The notes below the pieces were generated by a model. That model ran no database searches and was not told the origin of the DNA. It was given only the letters and a program-made list of their open reading frames with translations. Shown here in pieces: positions 1 to 9,009 of a stretch of DNA of 9,009 bases. Numbering within the stretch: position 1 is the stretch's first letter; the number at the start of each line of letters is the position of its first letter. This DNA is from Octopus sinensis (lineage: Eukaryota), in NCBI RefSeq assembly GCF_006345805.1, contig NW_021828160.1, positions 1 through 9,009 on the forward strand, read 5' to 3'. Both the position numbers and the translations under genes were made by a program.

Positions 1-426
1 TCCTTCTGAAGTAGATATTTTTGTAGTCCTATGGTGGTTTTTTTATGTAGTGTTTTCCAGCTGTATAATGCCTCTACCACCTTCTATACTGTTGTATATA
101 TAGTCTTGCTATGTCAGATTTTGGGTGGATGCATCCTAGATCCTGTCATATTTTTCTTGTTTTCCTATCTATTTGGTCAGTTCATTTAGTGTCCAGTTAA
201 GGATATTGTAGCTGTAACTTATCCTGGGACGGCTAAAGTGTTAGTACCTATAATCTTGTTTTTTAGCATTGAGCTCTGTTTTTAGTATTGATCTAACTCG
301 TCTATAATATTCTTTTTTTTTTATTTTCTCTTTCATTTGTGTGTGTTGTGTCTTATCTAGTTCATGGATTCCTAGGTATTTGTAAGTTTGGCTTTGGTCT
401 AATTCTTTGATTTCATTGGTTTTATC

Positions 427-427
<1 letters not shown>
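1..427 (-). mobile_element. 5'-truncated, frameshifted non-LTR retrotransposon fragment (REL-endonuclease type, R4/Dong-like): RT domain 7 and thumb; continues past the window start
   Basis: Minus-strand translation across several 1-bp frameshifts gives DKTNEIKELDQSQTYKYLGI (YKYLGI at 367-384), KEYYRRVRSILKTELNAK-NKIIGTNTLAVP, SYSYNILNWTLNE, MH-HPKSDIARLYIQ (from 134) and EGGRGIIQLEN (GGRG at 70-81). These match the YKYLG ... ELN..NK ... HP..D..RLY.PR..GGRG motif series of R2-superfamily/R4 LINEs. The clade call is from motif recall. Confidence 0.85.

Positions 428-460
<33 letters not shown>
428..460. repeat. (ATT)11 microsatellite, (TAA)n on the minus strand, abutting the 5' truncation point of the LINE fragment
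   Basis: Perfect trinucleotide run read directly. It produces the poly-Ile of ORF 241..477. Confidence 0.98.
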
Positions 461-960
461 GAGTGAGAGCAGTGCATGCCATCAAAGTGACATGAAGCCC
501 AGTATACCCATCTTGACTACCAGTCTGATAAGGTACAAGAGGCACATGCATCACAACCATATATGCATGACATGATGATCTCGCATCAAAATAAACCGCG
601 CATAACCTTCCAGGTGGGGCCTAGTTAGAGTTTTCTTCAGGTCAAGTGGCCCATCCCACTCAAAAGATCCTTGAATAAGAGTTGTTTCAGTATGTTGAAC
701 GGAACACCCATGTTTCCAGAGATGAATTCTCCAAACCCCAAATAATTCCTCTCAACACATGGCTATAATGCTTCCCACTCCTTCTGCTGGTGATCAGAGA
801 TGCACATAAGGTCAAACAACTGACAAATAAATCTGTGGTATTGAGCAGAATATTTGCTGTAACCCACCTTTTATACAAAGACAAAACAATGTACATAATA
901 ACACTTCCAATCAGTTAAGATCAAAGGCCATGATAACCACTGCCTGGTACTGCATCAGGG
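461..960. mobile_element. Unclassified ~500-bp interspersed repeat bounded by ATT-type tracts
   Basis: Complex sequence, roughly 40% GC in a sampled line and higher than its surroundings. It has sharp edges at (ATT)11 on the left (gagtgagagcagtgcatgcc...) and a degenerate ATT tract on the right (...gcatcaggg|tatttactattattgtta). It resembles an abundant octopus repeat as I recall it. No TIRs, A/B boxes or recognisable protein were seen. Confidence 0.5.
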
Positions 961-1140
961 TATTTACTATTATTGTTATATGTTTGACTTTTGCTTTGTA
1001 TTTGTACATGTTGGCTCCACGTCTCACCCAGAGACCTCAAAAGAAAACAAGTTAAAAGTTCATGTTGGTGATATGCTTAGGGTGTCATATATTTGGGTTT
1101 GCACATAGTATTTGCCAATTTTTATTTCAAGACCTATATA
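961..1140 (-). mobile_element. Probable 3' UTR end of an R4/Dong-like LINE with degenerate (TAA)n tail
   Basis: The minus strand reads ...ttgaggtctctgggtgagacgtggagccaacatgtacaaatacaaagcaaaagtcaaacat-ataacaataatagtaaata. This is a stem-loop (gtctc-tgggt-gagac) followed by a decayed TAA tail, with (AAT)9 at the 5' side. The family assignment is from recall of octopus LINE tails. Confidence 0.5.
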
Positions 1141-1141
1141 C

Positions 1142-1170
1142 ATTATTATTATTATTATTATTATTATTGT

Positions 1171-1213
<43 letters not shown>
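1142..1213. repeat. Compound microsatellite (ATT)9-GTT-(ACT)14
   Basis: Read directly. It explains the poly-Leu in ORF 1062..1385. Confidence 0.98.
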
Positions 1214-1356
1214 GAAATTGCAAAAAATTGAAATCAGTATGTTCTTACAATACCAAAAGAATGGAACTGACACCGTATTTGGAAAAAAAAAGGAGTCTAA
1301 GCTGGTTACTCATGGGAACCTAATTTATAATATTTTTACGACCTCAAATTTTCCAG

Positions 1357-1371
1357 GTCTGAACAGACAAT
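1357..1371 (+). CDS. Candidate 15-nt microexon of an unidentified host gene
   Basis: The sequence reads aaattttccag|GTCTGAACAGACAAT|gtaagt. There is an AG-free zone of about 55 nt upstream and a ctaat branch-point-like motif near 1320. The length preserves frame. Support is splice signals only. Confidence 0.25.
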
Positions 1372-1581
1372 GTAAGTGTGCTTAAATCGTCGACGCATAC
1401 ATTTGTGTGGTAAACTACAATGCAAATGGGTAAGGCTTTTCTGTGGTTAACATGCATTTCACACTGGATGATGTAATCTCTTTTGTATTTCGTATCTAAA
1501 TATAGATCTGTAGTTTTCTATAATTGATGCAGAATCTGTAAATAGGGAAACTGATGTGGTAGATTCGTCTAAAAATTAAAC

Positions 1582-1644
1582 TGTATGTATGTATGTATAT
1601 GTATGTATGTATGTATGTATCTATCTATCTATCTATCTATCTAT
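1582..1644. repeat. Compound (TATG)n-(TATC)n microsatellite
   Basis: Read directly. Confidence 0.95.
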
Positions 1645-1749
1645 TTTTCTCTCTTTCTAAATATATATGTGTGTGTTTTAGTGTGAGTATGTGTGTGTTT
1701 GTGAGTGTGTTTTTTTTTATTTGTGTGTTGGTATTAGATATGTGAATAT

Positions 1750-1990
1750 ACATACATATATGTACTTGTATATACCTGTATACATAAATATATGCATAGA
1801 CATACGTATATACATACATTAATACATACGTATATACATACATGCATATATACATACGTACATGCGTACACTCATTCATACATACATACATACATACATA
1901 CATACATACATACATACATACATACATACATACATGCATACACTCATACATACATACGTACATGCATACACACATGCATACATACATTCA
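1750..1990. repeat. Degenerate (CATA)n microsatellite array with CATG/CGTA/CACT variants
   Basis: Read directly. It is the source of ORFs 1637..1987, 1792..2013 and 1842..2042. Confidence 0.95.
1972..1990 (+). repeat. Left copy of a 19-bp direct repeat (probable target-site duplication) ACATGCATACATACATTCA
   Basis: Identical to 2883-2901, including the non-canonical CATG and TTCA interruptions. The match extends to 25 bp with one mismatch. Confidence 0.75.
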
Positions 1991-2863
1991 TGTTGAGGAA
2001 GTCTCAAGGATAGCACACTGTTTTACATGGAAACAGAAATAATAAAATTACAGACCGTTTCTTTGTGGATAACTTGAAATTATATGCAAAGAATATGCAT
2101 GAGACCAAATAGAGCCTTGACCCGGTGACAATATTCTCAAAGGATAAAAGGCTGAAACTTGGTCACGATAAATGTTGGTATATGGTCGTAGAAAGAGGGA
2201 AAACTGTAAACCTGACTAACAACATCTCCATCAATGACTTAACTGTTTCCCCTTTATCTGTTGAGGAATGTTACAGGTATCTTGGGGTGGATGAAAACAT
2301 TTCTTACAATGGCAGTTACACGAGCCACTACAGAATATTACAGAAAAAATAAAGAAACTTTGGACCTCGGAACTCTCTGCATTCAATAAAACAGTGGCCT
2401 ACAATGTATTTGAAGTACCTGTGAAATAGAATAACTACGCTGAACTATTCAAAAATCTGCAATTGCTCAATCCAGATTATAAGTTCAGGTTTATACCTGT
2501 ATTTATTGAGGCACTGAGATACATAACACACTGCTTAAATACCAATCTTACGAAATTAGGCTTCTCAAAACTAGAAAGGAGAAAGCGGATTCGAAGACTA
2601 CAATCTCAATCCTACACTTGAACTATAAAATGTGTAAGACTTTCCTGAGATTTATCATTTAAGTATATATGAGTATGTCTAGATATGCAACTATATGCAT
2701 GAGAATACATACATATAACAAAACATACAAATCTGCAGATATACAGTCGTACAAATATACTATGTTGATGGTATTGAATTTCCAATTAAGAAACCTTGGA
2801 TCAAGGTTAGAAACAGGCTCTTTCTTCACCGGCAAGAAATGTTGAAATGAAACCGAATTTTAA
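1991..2863 (+). mobile_element. 5'-truncated, internally deleted REL-type (R4/Dong-like) LINE pseudogene with ORF C-terminus and 3' UTR
   Basis: Translation gives KITDRFFVDNLKLYAKN (RT5; catalytic DD decayed to DN at 2068-2073), LGHDKC (RT6), CYRYLGVDE (RT7, 2272-2286) and EYYR-KIKKLWTSELSAFNKTVAYNVFEVPV. It then continues directly into NNYAELFKNLQLLNPDYKFRFIPVFIEAL (the post-endonuclease iPviiGaL motif) and CKTFLRFII* (stop 2660-2662). About 200 bp of 3' UTR ends at a (CATA)n tract. Internal stops and frameshifts are present. Confidence 0.85.
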
Positions 2864-2901
2864 CATACATAGATACATACATACATGCATACATACATTC
2901 A
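2864..2901 (+). repeat. (CATA)n tail/flank containing the right copy of the 19-bp TSD (2883-2901)
   Basis: Read directly: catacatagatacatacatacatgcatacatacattca. Confidence 0.85.
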
Positions 2902-2916
2902 ATCACGTAGTTGTTA

Positions 2917-3097
2917 AGGCAGTGGATTAGTAGAAACAGAAAAAAATGGTTTTCTTACGCTCAGTTAAAATCCCTGCATGGAAAAATTTGCCTTTAATTC
3001 CCAACGGGTCGATAACAACAGAATACCTGTCAATTACTGAGGCCCCACAAATCAACCAACACTTTCCTCCAAATTTCTGGCCTTCTACCTCATATAG
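2917..3097 (+). mobile_element. Strongly diverged tRNA-derived SINE
   Basis: It has a B-box-like agttaaaatcc (2963-2973), a core tttgccttt...cgggtcgataa...tacc and a tail aaatttctggcctt...cct. These resemble an octopus SINE consensus as I recall it. There are many substitutions. Confidence 0.5.
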
Positions 3098-3106
3098 AGG
3101 CCACGT

Positions 3107-3228
3107 TCTTTCTTTCTCTTTCTTTCTTTCTTTTTCTTTCTTTCCTCCTTTCTTCCTTCCTTTCTTTCCTCACCCCTCTCTCTCCATCTCGCTGTTTATG
3201 TCTCTCAGTTTATCTCTCTATCTCTCTT
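3107..3228. repeat. Polypyrimidine low-complexity tract (TTTC/TC)
   Basis: Read directly. Confidence 0.9.
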
Positions 3229-3233
3229 TAGAG

Positions 3234-3234
<1 letters not shown>

Positions 3235-3273
<39 letters not shown>

Positions 3274-3293
3274 TGTGAGCTCATAAGTATATT

Positions 3294-3338
<45 letters not shown>

Positions 3339-3504
3339 GTATGTATATATATATATGTATGTATATATATATATGTGTGTATAAATGTAAACATGCACAT
3401 ATATATTATGTATAATGTATATAATATATAGATTATATATATACATACATATATATATATATATTGTGCAATATATATGATATTTACATATATATATATA
3501 TATG

Positions 3505-3551
<47 letters not shown>

Positions 3552-3700
3552 ATATAATATATTATATATATATGTACGTATGTATGTATGTATGTATGTA
3601 TGTTATATAGATATATAAACATATATGTGCGTGCGTCTATGGAGAAAGAGAGAGAGGGGGAGAGATAGATAGATAGATAAAGAGAGAGAGAGAGAGAGAA
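3235..3700. repeat. Microsatellite complex: (TA)17, mixed TA/TG, (TATC)n near 3506-3550, (TATG)n near 3579-3602, (GA)/(GATA)n
   Basis: Read directly. Confidence 0.95.
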
Positions 3701-4053
3701 GAGATAGTCAGGAGTATGGAGAAATAGAATATCAGAAATTAGGAACTGGAATGAGGGACTTTTATGAAGGAGAAGAACAATGGGGAAATAAACCTGAAGC
3801 GATAGAAAGTGGAATTATAGTAAATATTAAAAATCAATAGCAGAAAAAGGGAAACGTTTTTTGAAGAAGTGTACGAGGAAGTATTAGGAACAGAAAGAGT
3901 CAGTTCTATTGATTAGTTTGCAGTAGCTACCATGGAAACTGCACCTATTGAGTAGCACGAGAGCTATGCGTGTTACATGTGTGACGTCAGATTTTTAGTC
4001 CCATTACATAAAGATTAGCTATATTATTGCAGAGAGGAAACAAAAAGAAATAG

Positions 4054-4056
<3 letters not shown>

Positions 4057-4084
<28 letters not shown>
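4057..4084. repeat. (CA)14 microsatellite
   Basis: Read directly. Confidence 0.97.
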
Positions 4085-4088
<4 letters not shown>

Positions 4089-4183
4089 CAGAATTGTACA
4101 AACACAATGCATACACACACAGATGTACATATGAATGTATGCACATACAACACATATAAACAAATATTTCAAATGTGTTCGTA

Positions 4184-4185
4184 CA

Positions 4186-4283
<98 letters not shown>
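4184..4283. repeat. Interrupted (TA)n microsatellite
   Basis: Read directly. Confidence 0.95.
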
Positions 4284-4478
4284 TTGTGTGGTGTGTGGGT
4301 GTCATTTATTTATATTATAAATATAATTAGTTTAAAATGAATTTTAACACGTATGTGTATACGTGTATGTTGTAATACATACAAATATATATATATATAT
4401 ACATACATATATAAGTATGTGTGTGTGCGTATTAGTTTTCAGTTTATGATTTTGTTTCGATTATTTCGGTCACTTCAG

Positions 4479-4574
4479 AATTAATGAAATAATTTCTGTA
4501 AAGAGATCGATGAAAGAATTCAGAAGGAATGAACAAAGTAGTCAAAGTGGAAGTGAATGTGTAAATTCGAAAAG
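4479..4574 (+). CDS. Candidate 96-nt symmetric (phase 2-2) exon of an unidentified host gene
   Basis: The sequence reads ttttgtttcgattatttcggtcacttcag|AATTAATG...TCGAAAAG|gtgatg. Only one frame is open (INEIISVKRSMKEFRRNEQSSQSGSECVNSK). The donor is weak at +5 and no homology was recognised. Confidence 0.2.
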
Positions 4575-5718
4575 GTGATGATAGATTTCGTTTTGGGGGA
4601 GTTGGTTAATTTAAATTTGTTGATGTTTAATTCCATATATAGTAACATTCCATATACAGTAACACCTTAACACCTTTAGTTTAAGGTTTAGCATTAGATA
4701 GGATTATAAAGGGTCGAGAGAGAATTTAGAAAAACGAAAAATGAAGGACTAATATATAAGCGCAAATTGCAACACATATATTAAGAAACGTTCAGTTCTA
4801 CTATTATGGAAAGATTAGAGAAAGAAAGCTTGTATAAATACTATGAAAGATATATGAGAGATAAGTTAAATAAATCTCAAATAATATTAAGCTCGTATAA
4901 AGTAAGAAATATTTAGAACGAAGGCATATTAAGTTTAAAATTAATATTTAGCTTACAAAAAGAAAGTGTTTTAAAAATTTTATGCTGGTGAAATTATTAA
5001 ATGAAAAGCCTGAAAGAGAAACGAAATAATTTTGAGAAGTAATATAGGAACTAGTAAAATGGATGAAAATAACTAGAGACGTCTGAGGAAAAAAGTTATG
5101 AAGGAATCGTGGGTAATGCATAGCGAACAGTCAGATCTAAATAGGTCTTTATAATAAAGTGGGTAGAGATAAACGAGTAGAATGATATAAACATTTGTCG
5201 CATTGTACGCATATTGGTTTAACAAAATGGTGGACAAATTGATCAAAGCGTCTGAAATTAAGCGAGTAAACACATGAAAACTCACAGGCAAGCAGTTAAT
5301 GACCGGCAATGGGGAGCCAGTAAACTAGCCTCCTGGATCGTCTTCAACTTAACTGACACTCATTGTTGCATTCTGAGGGTAAATGCGTCCTCAGATAAGG
5401 CATTTACAATTTATTAATGCAAATTCTCTTCCATCTGCTAACTTTAAAGTATCTAATGGTGAACTTTAAACGGTAGGTCTGTCTGACTATAAATGAACTT
5501 AAACGTTCATAATATTAAATTAAGCAACTTGCCACAACTAAATCTAACTGACTCTTTGATCTTAGACTTTCACTGCCTCCCTCACTTCTATTCATCTTCT
5601 CCTCCTCCAAAACAATTTAACTAATAATTTAATTTCTTCTTCACTCACGAGTCCGGAATAGTTAACTGAAATAACTGAAACAGAATTAATTATAAACCTG
5701 CAAACTAATGTATATATA

Positions 5719-5774
5719 TGGCTGTGTGGTAAGAAACTTATTTACCAAAATCGCATGGTTCCGGGTTCTGTCCC
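5719..5774 (+). promoter_or_regulatory. Pol III type-2 internal promoter (A and B boxes) of the SINE
   Basis: TGGCTGTGTGG and GGTTCTGTCCC are separated by 34 nt. Both are imperfect matches to the tRNA box consensus. Confidence 0.6.
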
Positions 5775-6039
5775 ACTGCGTGGTACCTTGGGCATGTGCC
5801 AACTGCTATATCCTCGAACTGACCAAGGTGTGGATTTGGTAGAGTGAAACTGAAAGAAGTCCGTTGTATATATACATATCTATATATATATGTGTGTGTG
5901 TCTTTGTGTTTGTCCTCCCATCACCGCTTGACAACCGACGTTGGTGTGTTTACGTCACTGTAACTTAGCGGTTCGGCAAAACAGTCGATAGAATAAGTAC
6001 TAAGATTTAAAAAACAAGTGCTGCGTTCACTCCAGCATG
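5719..6039 (+). mobile_element. tRNA-derived SINE, near full length (octopus OK/OR-type), with internal (TA)/(TG) microsatellite
   Basis: A box TGGCTGTGTGG (5719-5729) and B box GGTTCTGTCCC (5764-5774) are present. The body includes ccactgcgtggtaccttgggca, tggatttggtaga..gaaactgaaagaag, cgcttgacaaccga..tggtgtgtttacgtc..gtaacttagcggttcggcaaaa and gatagaataagtac. These match the abundant octopus SINE as I recall it; the 3' part is shortened. Confidence 0.85.
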
Positions 6040-6339
6040 TTCTTTGTCTATCTCCTTAACTTCTTGTTGATTTTAGGCATAATTATACTGTGTCAATCTT
6101 TTCTAATTTAATTAAATTATATGTCTTTGTGCAGCTGAGGATTAATCTGCATTTAAATTGATCTAATTGTTGCATTGTTCAATTAAATGGACTTGCATGA
6201 AATGATCGTACTGCATTACCTCTGGATATTCTTGTTGCTTATTTTGATTTTAATCACCTTACTTTGAATTGTACGATAATACCGTACTAAATTCTGCTGC
6301 CTCAACTTAGTGCCATATTCATCTGAATCTAAATTTTTG

Positions 6340-6340
<1 letters not shown>

Positions 6341-6384
<44 letters not shown>
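6341..6384. repeat. (TA)22 microsatellite abutting the palindrome
   Basis: Read directly. Confidence 0.97.
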
Positions 6385-6390
<6 letters not shown>

Positions 6391-6553
6391 CAATTTAGGA
6401 TGGCCTTAATAGGCCATTCGTCCATAGAAAGAGCAGCCATAACTCAAAGTGCTAAGTAGTTAATTCAGTTATGGCTACTTAGCGGTTTGAGTTATGGCTG
6501 CTCTTTCTAGTGGACGAATGGCCTATTAAGGCCATTCCTAAAATTGTTTAATT
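6384..6553. mobile_element. 170-bp fold-back palindrome (MITE-like or inverted retroelement terminus) in a (TA)n context
   Basis: The arms at 6384-6459 (76 nt) and 6475-6553 (79 nt) are reverse complements at 74 of 79 aligned columns (3 one-base gaps, 2 mismatches), with a 15-nt spacer. The structure is certain; the element class is inferred. Confidence 0.75.
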
Positions 6554-6982
6554 TTATATATTTAGTCTTTGACTATTTACTCTTTCCCACTAGACCGCTG
6601 GTAGCGATAAATTTCTACTGAATTATTTTTGCTACCCTAAATTGATTATATATATATATAATATATATATATATAGGTGTACAAATGGACGGAAAACAGA
6701 TAGACAGGCAGACAGACAGACACACAGACACACACATGCACATGCATATTTATGTGTGTGGCAATCGTTGGATCTCTGTGTTCGGTAATGAGGAATCAGT
6801 TGTCCAATCAACTCAAATAAGTGTAACTGTCCCGGAATTTAAGTACGAGTGAATCTTCAATATATATATATATATATATTACTATATATATCTAAATATA
6901 TACCTATAACCTTCATTTAATACTTAGGCAGAATCACCGTGATAAATTGCATGAAGGAGCTTTTGAATCCTGCCGATTTTAA

Positions 6983-7121
6983 TCACTTTCCGACTTATTA
7001 GTTTCATCCTGATGCTATGATTTCACTCGAGATTATAGATGACATTTGCCCAGGTTGCTGCGCAGCGTGATCGAACCTGAGACTTTACGGTTGCAAAGAG
7101 AACTTCCTAAACGTTCGGTCA
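6983..7121 (-). mobile_element. Diverged SINE head, same family as 5719-6039, inverted orientation
   Basis: The minus strand has B box GGTTCGATCAC (7067-7077). The segment tcgagattatagatgacatttgcccaggttgctgcgcag aligns with the reverse complement of 5776-5817 (tcgaggatatagcagttggcacatgcccaaggtaccacgcag). Confidence 0.7.
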
Positions 7122-7176
7122 TACTGCGCTTAGGCAGCCCATCGACAAAAGCATGTGCGTTATCTATCTATCTATC

Positions 7177-7931
7177 TGCACGCGCTCGTGCAATGTCCAG
7201 CTGAGTCTATCGTCAATATTGTCACGCCTCCTTCCTTCAAACGGGAAGGAAGAGCTATTTCATCATTCTTGTGGCTATGGCGAAAGAATGTATCTGGTGG
7301 ACGCGTCTGAAAGGATTGGAGACAAACACTTTCCTCTCTGGTCATCTCTCATCAACCTCTTCAAGTACCACTTGAAAAGGAAAGTAAGAGTAGAGAGGCA
7401 AGGTTTGTCTAGCGAATGTTTTAAAAAAAAGATGGGTGAGTGTAGAGGATGGCACGTTTGAATGACGAAGCCACCTTGAGCATAATCCTATGAACCCAGA
7501 AATTGAAAACAGAGGGTTACCCACTTGCAAACAAATGTGGTAACATATAACAATATTGACCAAGGTTACCGTGGTCTTTTTTGTAGGCTTTTCTTCTCAT
7601 GGATAAACCTTACTTGCTTTCCCCTTTACACCATATATCATAACACTGTGATACACGATCCCTATTGATCGTTCTTTTTTTTCCTCTTCCCCCTTTTTCC
7701 CCTTTTTTAATTTCTCTTTCCTTTTCCTTTTCCTTTTCTTTTTTTTTCTTTTTATTTTATTCAATTTTTTTTCTTTGTTCTTTTCTTCCCTTTTACGATC
7801 CCTCTTGATCGAAAACCTACGCCACCCCCTTTTTTTTCTTTTGTTTTTTGTTCTCTTCATCCCCCAAAAGAAAAGCTCTACCTTGTAACTTGTCCCATCT
7901 GTGTGCAGCCCTGTGTGGCCAATAAAGAAAC

Positions 7932-7932
<1 letters not shown>
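7177..7932 (+). mobile_element. 5'-truncated L1/Tx1-clade LINE 3' end (ORF2 C-terminus pseudogene, T-rich 3' UTR, AATAAA)
   Basis: Frameshift-corrected translation gives ESIVNIVTPPSFKREGRAI / FIILVAMAKECIWWTRLKGLETNTFLSG / SLINLFKYHLKRKVRVERQGLSSECFKK / RWVSV / RMARLNDEATLSIIL* (stop 7491-7493). AK..IW..R is the L1/Tx1 ORF2 C-terminal motif. A pyrimidine-rich UTR at 7670-7860 is followed by AATAAA at 7921-7926, then (TATC)n from 7933. Confidence 0.75.
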
Positions 7933-7993
<61 letters not shown>

Positions 7994-8066
7994 CTCTCTC
8001 TCTCTAACTCTCTATCTATCTATCTCTCTCTAACTCTCTATCTATCTATCTCTCTCTCTCTAACTC

Positions 8067-8130
<64 letters not shown>
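7933..8130. repeat. (TATC)n array with three internal TC/TAAC higher-order units
   Basis: Read directly; TAAC at 8005, 8031 and 8061. Confidence 0.97.
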
Positions 8131-8135
8131 CCTGT

Positions 8136-8136
<1 letters not shown>

Positions 8137-8182
<46 letters not shown>

Positions 8183-8340
8183 GATAGATAGATAGGTAGA
8201 TAGGTAGATAGGTAGGTAGCTGTCTGCCTGCCTGCTTGCCTTTCTGTCTGCCTGTCTCTCGGTGTGTCTGTCTGTCTATTTGCTTGTCTGTCTATTTGCC
8301 TGTCTGTCTATCTATCTGTGTGAATGTCTGCTTTCTGTCT
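8137..8340. repeat. (TAGA)n grading into (TAGG)n and degenerate (GTCT/GCCT)n
   Basis: Read directly. Confidence 0.93.
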
Positions 8341-8766
8341 GTAATCCTACAATCCCACACAGAAAACTAAACACATAACAGGAACAGAACTACATAAATT
8401 TTATTTGCTTGCTTTTATGTATAATGTTAAGGGCATATTGATTTCATGTTTATATTTGCATCGCATATTATGAAATATTTAAATATATTATTAAATTATC
8501 TGATACTCTTAAAACATTCTTCGTGATCATGAATTATTTCGATATTATCAAGAGTAAACCAAAACAAAAAAAAAAAACAGCAAAATATTTGAAAAAATGA
8601 AGCAAAATTTATATCATTCTGATAATGTGTTGTTTTCATGTATCATTAAACACATTTACACAGAAACATACAGAAAGACACAGAGACACACACATACGCG
8701 CGCGTGCGCGCAAACACGTCCACACAAACATTCACATAGCTAAAGTCAAAGAAAAAGATGAACATG

Positions 8767-8767
8767 C

Positions 8768-8798
<31 letters not shown>

Positions 8799-8830
8799 AT
8801 ATTATATATATATATACATATATATATAAA
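8767..8830. repeat. Interrupted (TA)n microsatellite
   Basis: Read directly. Confidence 0.95.
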
Positions 8831-9009
8831 CATATTCATATACACATATGAATATGTTTGCGTCCATGTGTATGGCTTTACATCATTTTTCACCCGGATA
8901 TAAATTTTGGTTTCTAGAACACTCATGTACTACATTCATAGGCGACGCCAAAGAGGACAGATATTTTTTTTCTCTAGAAAATTTTCACGGCAGACCCTTA
9001 TTATGTATA

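Follow-up and report, generated by a model that had tools for sequence, protein, structure and literature searches.

Several long interspersed elements (LINEs) are known to insert into microsatellites. Dong inserts into (TAA)n in silkworm, mosquito and a snail; the targets are (ACAY)n for Waldo, (AC)n for Mino, (TC)n for Kibi and (TTC)n for Koshi. Such elements coexist within one genome, as Waldo, Mino and DongAg do in Anopheles gambiae and Kibi and Koshi in pufferfish (PMC3812793). Most LINEs with a restriction-like endonuclease (RLE) are target-specific, microsatellites being among their targets; Togen is specific for (TG)n, and some HERO families are also microsatellite-specific (PMC4640811). 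LINE tails are known to give rise to microsatellites (PMC3812793, PMC2887409). In Octopus vulgaris, Dong-R4 elements are reported to be the most abundant of the recently active LINEs, and L1-Tx1 families to be plentiful as well (PMC13282606). Here we analyze a stretch of 9,009 nucleotides from Octopus sinensis (contig NW_021828160.1, positions 1 to 9,009, forward strand), hereafter the window. Our reading, which we consider probable, is that it holds three dead, 5′-truncated LINE copies from three families, each family ending in and preferring its own microsatellite: (TAA)n for element A, (ACAT)n for element B and (TATC)n for element C. A fourth element, D, is a palindromic DNA element next to (TA)n.

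Microsatellites were called with Tandem Repeats Finder (TRF), and element identity was approached by six-frame translation, Pfam, blastn, tblastn and a PDB search. The comparison loci are named L001 to L012, and two further segments of the window are named X (461-960) and A2 (981-1140).

Elements A, B and C and their flanking repeats

The LINE-related features of the window and the repeats joined to them are as follows.

1-427, minus strand: element A, a decayed, 5′-truncated Dong-like RLE LINE, C-terminal part of the reverse transcriptase (RT) (translation, homologues, tblastn, blastn)
422-460, minus strand: (TAA)n, (TTA)n on the forward strand, adjoining the truncated 5′ end of A on its upstream side (TRF, 12.7 copies at 94%; junction sequence)
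1780-1991, plus strand: degenerate (ACAT)n, called as (ATAC)n, at the 5′ junction of B (TRF, 52.5 copies, 76% matches)
1992-2862, plus strand: element B, a 5′-truncated, internally deleted copy of a second RLE-LINE lineage (translation, alignments)
2863-2898, plus strand: (ACAT)9 after the 3′ end of B, either tail or target (TRF)
7161-7177, plus strand: (TATC)4.25, called as (TATC)4, directly at the truncated 5′ end of C (TRF, junction sequence)
7178-7932, plus strand: element C, plausibly the 3′ end of an L1/Tx1-like LINE of the apurinic/apyrimidinic endonuclease (APE) type (homology to L007-L009)
7933-8130, plus strand: (TATC)n following the 3′ end of C, about 50 units with TCTCTCTAAC blocks among them (TRF score 284)

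In six-frame translation, element A reads as the C-terminal region of an RT (YKYLGI...EYYRRVRSILKTELNAKNK...HPKSDIARLY..GGRGII); several frameshifts and stops interrupt the translation, which runs ..YKYLGI..KEKIKKKEYYRRVRSILKTELNAKNK..NTLAVP..HPKSDIARLY..GGRGIIQLE. The conceptual translation has 528 homologous open reading frames (ORFs), the best of them 56-59% identical and all from ENA or JGI assemblies. Residues 483-603 of the Dong-like ORF of L001 match window positions 414-49 in tblastn, and A is 67-71% identical to L001 and L002 in blastn. The truncation point falls at about residue 480-600 of the reference, where the copy adjoins (TAA)n at 460-422 on the element strand. Beside an A homologue, L001 carries a 903-residue open frame with an RVT_1 match (E = 9e-28), and the solved structures closest to this frame are R2 retrotransposon proteins (E = 1e-31), with LINE-1 ORF2p at E = 1e-18. 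Its C-terminal motifs CRMCG..H..C, RRPD, IIDFAIP and EKIEKYQDL align with CRNC..H..C, RKPD, VDVTV and EKVRHYKDL of R2, which constitute a CCHC knuckle and a restriction-like nuclease. The window copy ends before the nuclease, and we assign A to the 5′-truncated RLE LINEs from its sequence, on account of the L001 homologue with its R2-like CCHC and nuclease.

Element B comprises the end of the RT (..CYRYLGVDEN..EYYRKIKKLWTSELSAFNKTVAYNVFEVPV), the extreme C-terminus of the ORF and a 3′ untranslated region (UTR) of ~240 nt. An internal deletion lies near 2425-2440, and the final part of the ORF (NYAELFKNLQLLNPDYKFRFIPVFIEALRYITHCLNTNLTKLGF) follows it; what is retained there is the last ~60 residues after the nuclease, and their ‘IPVFIEALRY..’ aligns with the PIVVGALGY end of RLE ORFs. 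The B protein is 61% identical to O. sinensis LOC115227337, and its DNA is 75% identical to positions 10184-10605 and 90% identical to positions 11223-11310 of L003, a locus on an O. sinensis chromosome. The only Pfam match to the frames of the window is a weak RVT_1 match on B (E = 0.037). Homology to the longer O. sinensis copy begins at 1985, and the junction shares CAT(T)CAT with L003, indicating that B is 5′-truncated and joined to the repeat via CAT(T)CAT microhomology.

The motifs CRLC..H..C, KPDI(M/L)IW, VE(I/F)S.P.D, EK..Y and PI(V)VGA(L)GY characterize the lineage of B and are found in the O. bimaculoides fragment L004 and in the intact ORFs of L005 and L006. These shared motifs confirm B as a second, divergent RLE LINE lineage. 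The ORFs of L001, L005 and L006 match RVT_1 at E = 1e-23 to 1e-27, and the CCHC and PD-(D/E)xK nuclease occur in the relatives and in L004, with CR.C..H..C, [RK]PD, D/E and EK..Y aligning with R2. Lineage B is ~25-29% identical to the Dong-like ORF. Residues 589-667 of the 693-residue ORF in L005 also give a weak Pfam match (E = 0.028) to the N-terminus of the bunyavirus L protein, a PD-(D/E)xK endonuclease. This match lies on the predicted RLE region and is consistent with the fold assignment, without being significant.

Element C starts inside a C-terminal CCHC knuckle and extends through a T-rich 3′ UTR of ~470 nt with AATAAA at 7921-7926; its 3′ end reads AATAAA..gaaact and is followed by (TATC)~50. 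The Logan contigs L007-L009 are 70-77% identical to C over ~100-200 nt. Directly upstream of the homologous part they show a decayed RT (..VNATVTTSEPFIIMRSVWKVCFHCPSCMY.., read as VNG..S..F...RGVRQGCPLSPLLY), and they contain a CPRCAQ.DET..H..C knuckle and possible APE C-terminal motifs. The motifs read by eye in these decayed contigs are FTW.., ..DY/SDH-like, GVRQGCPLSP-like and CPRC..DET..H. In the true-frame alignment the window copy starts within the knuckle (HALVQCP) and continues with ..ESIVNIVTPPSF..LVAMAKECIWWTRLKGL.., and a reading of ‘CTRSCNVQ’ as the CCHC start was dropped because the copy begins at the H..C half. A Pfam zf-RVT match of the C relatives is weak (E = 0.062); Pfam gave no match for window positions 7150-7940, nor did the stitched L007 RT match any PDB entry. 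C is plausibly the 3′ end of a LINE of the APE type whose C-terminus is L1/Tx1-style.

An ATG-initiated ORF of 102 residues (7153-7461) was rejected as a gene, since it is spurious and the LINE frame is another. The sole significant match in an exhaustive search with this ORF (E <= 1e-10) was a chance match to a tetratricopeptide-repeat protein, and its real relatives are three short ORFs on Logan contigs. The apparent conservation of the ORF is an artefact of DNA conservation and gene calling.

The repeat that follows C has features of its own. Three TCTCTCTAAC-type blocks lie in the (TATC)n at 7933-8130, suggesting a higher-order repeat. Across 7933-8225 the (TATC)n flips strand to (ATAG)n over a 5-bp spacer (8131-8135), with arms of 75-90 nt that are 86-93% complementary. 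This repeat palindrome could allow hairpin extrusion or be the mark of an inverted duplication.

To estimate the chance of finding the right repeat at a junction, we determined the share of positions that directly follow 12 bp or more of that repeat on the right strand, one mismatch allowed; the sample was the window plus 42 kb of octopus DNA independent of it (L003 and L004). The 3′ repeat was taken as part of the element, leaving the 5′ junction as the only chance event. The fractions were as follows.

TAA: 0.01-0.5% of positions
ACAT: 0.1-1.6% of positions
TATC: 0-2.4% of positions
TA: 0.2-3.2% of positions

All three visible LINE 5′ junctions in the window carry the matching repeat. With a chance of at most 2.4% for each, coincidence is unlikely for A, B and C. 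Of the 14 unique segments of the window, only three lie between matching non-TA repeats, and these are exactly the segments that contain the claimed pieces. The segment between TTA and ATT repeats (461-1141) contains just X and A2, and fragment A, at the window edge, has one visible flank.

An earlier note on this DNA had described several mobile lineages, each embedded in a different microsatellite. This description holds for at least two RLE-LINE lineages and probably for one APE-type lineage, with the association recurring in relatives from other genomes, and does not hold for the palindromic element D. The RLE LINE that the note had placed at 1-427 and joined to (TAA)n was confirmed by translation, homologues and the TRF call at 422-460, as was the divergent one at 1991-2863 with (CATA)n on both sides, which is the second RLE lineage between ACAT-type repeats. 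The L1/Tx1 copy proposed at 7177-7932 does have TATC on both flanks, and its identity is plausible through L007-L009, in a single copy.

Relatives in other assemblies and described families

The relatives of A repeat the arrangement in the window. In the 14.5 kb of L001, all 15 microsatellite tracts of at least 15 bp are of the TAA type, and tblastn finds six Dong-like copies in one orientation. The locus does not include the 5′ end of copy 1; five further copies or ORFs start 1-22 nt past a (TAA)n, and copy 6 (12984) is without (TAA)n at its start and is preceded by TATATATA. At the other end, 5 of 5 3′ UTRs (~66-107 nt) are followed by (TAA)n, and a 173-bp stub (5604-5775) has (AAT)n on both sides. 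In the solitary truncated copy of L002, (ATA)12 lies at the 5′ junction and TAATTAATAA follows the 3′ UTR. Like Dong of the R4 clade (Bombyx mori, Anopheles gambiae, Biomphalaria glabrata), the A relatives have an RT with a C-terminal CCHC and a PD..D..K nuclease, (TAA)n at both junctions (in L001, one copy excepted, and in L002) and head-to-tail arrays in TAA tracts (PMC3812793). This likeness is one of motifs and repeats, and the window copy contributes its 5′ junction.

In lineage B the repeat at the 3′ end is constant within each sublineage, either (ACAT)n or (ACTT)n, which differ by one base, and the 5′ junction carries the repeat often but not always. As in the window, (ACAT)n lies past the homologous 3′ end in L003, L006 and L010. 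The near-full O. sinensis copy in L003 ends with gaaatcttgaaataaactgaataatg, after which a degenerate ACAT-rich run begins. L006 (37% identical protein) holds an intact-looking two-ORF copy in which (ACAT)31 begins 160 nt past the stop codon, and L010 (48% identical) holds four tandem copies with spacers of (CATA)7 or (CATA)50. Loci L005, L012 and L002 come from one assembly. The first two contain a related family with (CTTA)n spacers, equivalent to (TTAC)n, on both sides: in L012, (TTAC)75 stops 1 nt short of a truncated copy and (TTAC)4 follows its ~830-nt 3′ UTR, and in L005 two 3′ ends align up to the repeat. In L011, (CTTA)66 lies upstream of the LINE, but the tail is (GTAA)6, the opposite strand class.

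Two of these loci carry further repeats next to the LINE copies. The 3′ UTRs of L010 (2900-3450, 5990-6450 and 9460-9800) contain ~25-35 tandem 15-bp units (gtctatattgtctgg) ahead of the terminal (CATA)n. Past the (GTAA)6-tailed LINE of L011, a tRNA-like segment of ~415 bp (4808-5295) that resembles a short interspersed element (SINE) lies between two (GTAA)n runs; possibly it is a partner SINE with the same tail as the LINE.

Comparison with described families places B and C near known elements without assigning them to any. Like Togen, which is NeSL-related and specific for (TG)n, and like some HERO families, lineage B belongs to the RLE LINEs and has a family-specific microsatellite between its copies (PMC4640811). 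It differs in having a tetranucleotide repeat, which is (ACAT)n in octopus, L006 and L010 but (TTAC)n in the loci L005 and L012, and in that the octopus 5′ junctions are repeat-flanked in one of three copies. Waldo, an APE-type element of the R1 clade that targets (ACAY)n, uses the same repeat class as the (ACAT)n of B, but Waldo encodes an APE and B an RLE; B is thus not a Waldo element, and the likeness would be one of convergence on a target. Kibi and Koshi of the Tx1 clade would share with C the APE type and an L1/Tx1-style C-terminal CCHC, and C too has one microsatellite on both sides of a truncated copy, whereas their repeats are (TC)n and (TTC)n and that of the one C copy is (TATC)n.

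Because several microsatellite-specific LINEs already coexist in the Anopheles and pufferfish genomes, the niche partitioning that had been proposed for this DNA is a known pattern restated in a new host. Two parts may be new, as judged from the literature: the link of an RLE lineage to (ACAT)n and (ACTT)n, and that of an L1/Tx1-like element to (TATC)n. A more far-reaching possibility, which we hold only tentatively and think doubtful, is that lineage B is an undescribed RLE LINE clade of octopuses and several other marine invertebrate assemblies, with sublineages switching between (ACAT)n and (ACTT)n, and that it joins the A- and C-type elements in using and seeding the dense octopus repeats.

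If the pattern is genome-wide, the octopus would join the genomes where several LINE families keep clear of genes by inserting into different repeats, and would be the first cephalopod example within a limited full-text literature search. LINE tails would then be a measurable source of new microsatellites in a repeat-rich genome with active Dong-R4 and L1-Tx1 elements. As tools for site-specific insertion, RLE LINEs that recognize a short and defined DNA target are practically attractive, and close lineages preferring (ACAT)n or (ACTT)n would be a natural experiment on specificity change. The window as such contributes an example rather than a principle.

Competing accounts of the junctions

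The best-supported account of the junctions is repeat-directed target-primed reverse transcription. The element RNA would end in a few units of the family repeat, and the element-encoded endonuclease would nick a matching repeat tract, whose nicked strand could pair with the RNA tail and prime reverse transcription. Reverse transcription would usually abort, giving 5′ truncation, and the cDNA end would be rejoined into the repeat tract (in B by the CAT(T)CAT microhomology), leaving a truncated copy with the same repeat on both sides. Where integration occurs outside a repeat, as it may have done in L006 and L003, the tail would seed a new microsatellite, which could grow by slippage and attract further copies. 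Later copies landing in earlier tails would produce head-to-tail arrays such as those of L001, L005 and L010. The identities of the elements, their truncation points and flanks, the recurrence in relatives and the low odds of a chance match are what the analysis shows; cleavage specificity, tail annealing and repeat growth are the steps that we infer in this account.

Several observations weigh against this account. Upstream of the likely 5′ end of the L003 copy there is only (AT)9, and the 5′ flank of the L004 fragment, whose 3′ part is lost, is C2H2 zinc-finger-like, unique sequence. Among the octopus copies, ACAT is thus at the 5′ junction in one of three, that of the window, so that a 3′ tail and a target are not separable there. 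No ACAT run was found in the 1.5 kb upstream of the ORF in the full-length-looking copy of L006, and three of the four copies in L010 look duplicated and are not independent insertions. For A, the 3′ end lies past the left window edge and only the 5′ junction is visible. The association of C with (TATC)n is seen in one copy only, as L007-L009 stop before the 3′ end, and a single-protein scan of metagenome contigs found no C relatives. The specificity could reside in the protein, with its endonuclease or DNA-binding parts responsible as they are in R2, or in the annealing of the RNA tail to the nicked repeat, and both would give the same anatomy. The earlier note had written of sequence-specific endonucleases that divide the microsatellite types among them, and annealing of an RNA repeat tail would serve as well as such endonucleases. 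The mixed 5′ flanks that it had named as evidence against its proposal were found in part for octopus lineage B, in the (AT)9 of L003 and the zinc-finger-gene-like flank of L004. Its observation is partly confirmed and its interpretation partly supported.

The same B copies, in L003, L004 and L006, are what would be expected if the microsatellite is no more than a 3′ tail made or copied by the RT, with insertion sites that are not repeat-specific and 5′ matches that are coincidences or the tails of older neighbours. Simple repeat makes up 21.5% of the window, which would favour such coincidences, and nearly all (TAA)n tracts in L001 lie just downstream of the 3′ end of another copy. However, the chance per junction of at most 2.4%, far lower for TAA, is hard to reconcile with matches at 3 of 3 LINE 5′ junctions in the window. 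Truncated copies also begin 1-22 nt past the repeat in L001, L002, L005, L010 and L012, and landing in the tail of an older copy is itself repeat-directed integration. We consider a tails-only origin unlikely, if still a serious competitor. A passive co-accumulation of repeats and LINE debris in poorly purged, low-recombination regions, or expansion of repeats from A/T-rich ends after insertion, would need no link between family and repeat; co-accumulation is an explanation offered for Waldo-A and Waldo-B beside CA repeats in Drosophila (PMC3812793), and many repeats in the window are attached to no element. Yet it leaves unexplained the family-matched type and strand of the repeats, both in the window and in unrelated assemblies, and why the non-LINE segments of the window are without matched non-TA flanks. 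This explanation appears very improbable. Repeat-directed integration is the reading we retain for A, B and C, with the mixed 5′ junctions of lineage B indicating a preference weaker than that of Dong.

The contribution of the elements to the repeats is limited. TRF arrays of period 6 or less cover ~21.5% of the window, and perfect repeats of at least 12 bp make up 11.5%. Of the 1935 repeat bases, 533 (~27%) are joined to the claimed elements, and many repeats are joined to none. Because only this part is element-attached, the elements alone cannot account for the repeat density, which they had been proposed to help explain. The companion proposal, that tails feed microsatellite growth, holds in that repeats are carried to new places, as in L006 with (ACAT)31 and no upstream ACAT; growth itself would be a further step.

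Element D and other features of the window

The remaining features are as follows.

461-960: segment X, a 500-bp insert breaking the TAA-type tract between A and 961-1140 (flanks, similarity search)
981-1140: segment A2, 160 bp with TAA-type repeats on both sides (flanks)
1142-1172: (ATT)n (TRF)
1142-1213: compound tract of (ATT)10 then (TAC)14 (TRF)
6341-6384: (TA)22 (TRF)
6384-6553: element D, a palindromic miniature inverted-repeat transposable element (MITE) at the right edge of (TA)22 (self-complementarity, minimum free energy, end alignment)

Element D is a near-perfect palindrome of 170 bp, 89% self-complementary, with a predicted minimum free energy of -124 kcal/mol (ViennaRNA, default RNA parameters). 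It had been described as sitting in (TA)n. The palindrome is real, but (TA)22 adjoins only its left end, the right flank being TTTATATATTTA, and the site fits a TA or TTAA target. The flanks read ..tatataa TTAA acaattt...aaattgt TTAA ttttatata, so that the ends are readable as a TTAA or a TA duplication. D is probably an ordinary DNA transposon whose TA or TTAA target is merely abundant beside (TA)n; TA repeats flank both sides of 4 of the 14 unique segments in the window, and in repeat-rich octopus DNA ~3% of random junctions would be expected to adjoin (TA)n. An AT-rich target preference suffices for D, and one copy is not enough to show microsatellite specificity. The possibility that D belongs to a MITE family truly targeting (TA)n microsatellites has a precedent in rice Micron, whose MITEs insert into TA microsatellites (PMC3812793), and it would fit the (TA)22 at the left end and the TATATA near the right end. 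We regard it as quite unlikely for a single copy with a one-sided repeat, given how common TA flanks are elsewhere in the window and that the ends read equally well as a TTAA duplication. As a short palindromic non-autonomous element next to (TA)n, D resembles the Micron- and Stowaway-type (TA) and piggyBac-type (TTAA) MITEs; it differs from them in its ambiguous duplication and in having the repeat on one side only.

Segment X is flanked by (TTA)n at 422-460 and a degenerate ‘tatttactattattgttata’ at 961-980, and had no match in any comparison locus. It looks inserted into the TAA tract and could be another (TAA)n-using element or a long 3′ UTR of family A. Segment A2 lies between the degenerate TAA-type run at 961-980 and (ATT)10 at 1142-1172, the same anatomy as the 173-bp stub in L001, and may represent what remains of the 3′ end of a minus-strand Dong-like copy. 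The span 961-1140 had also been called an RLE LINE joined to (TAA)n. Its TAA-type flanks are confirmed, and for the LINE identity no similarity was found to Dong-like C-termini (tblastn) or to elements A and B in the window or the comparison loci (blastn). The (ATT)10 after A2 runs straight into a perfect (TAC)14 (1142-1213), and the two units are one base apart.

The window is AT-rich, with a GC content of 23-45% per 500-bp window. Its sequence marks it as octopod-type nuclear DNA, given the match of B to O. sinensis and a SINE-like match to octopus loci. The latter is a SINE-like copy at 5700-6010 on the plus strand, 79% identical to positions 12227-11930 of the O. sinensis locus L003 and with several matches in the O. 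bimaculoides locus L004. Another SINE-like segment (6903-7160, minus strand) has a tRNA-like core, ‘GGTTCGATC..CTGCGCAGCAACCTGGGCA’, read by eye, and its tail end enters (AT)n at 6860-6902; ARAGORN called no tRNA in the window, this segment included. An Rfam scan of the window gave 43 matches at E < 0.1, mostly to miRNA families; all were below the gathering score and on microsatellites or the MITE hairpin (for example 1789-1859, 8068-8207 and 6425-6509), and they were dismissed as repeat artefacts. The sequences at 4549-4643 and 5486-5577 form an inverted pair ~1 kb apart, with 72.6% identity over 95 nt, and may represent terminal inverted repeats from an old DNA transposon.

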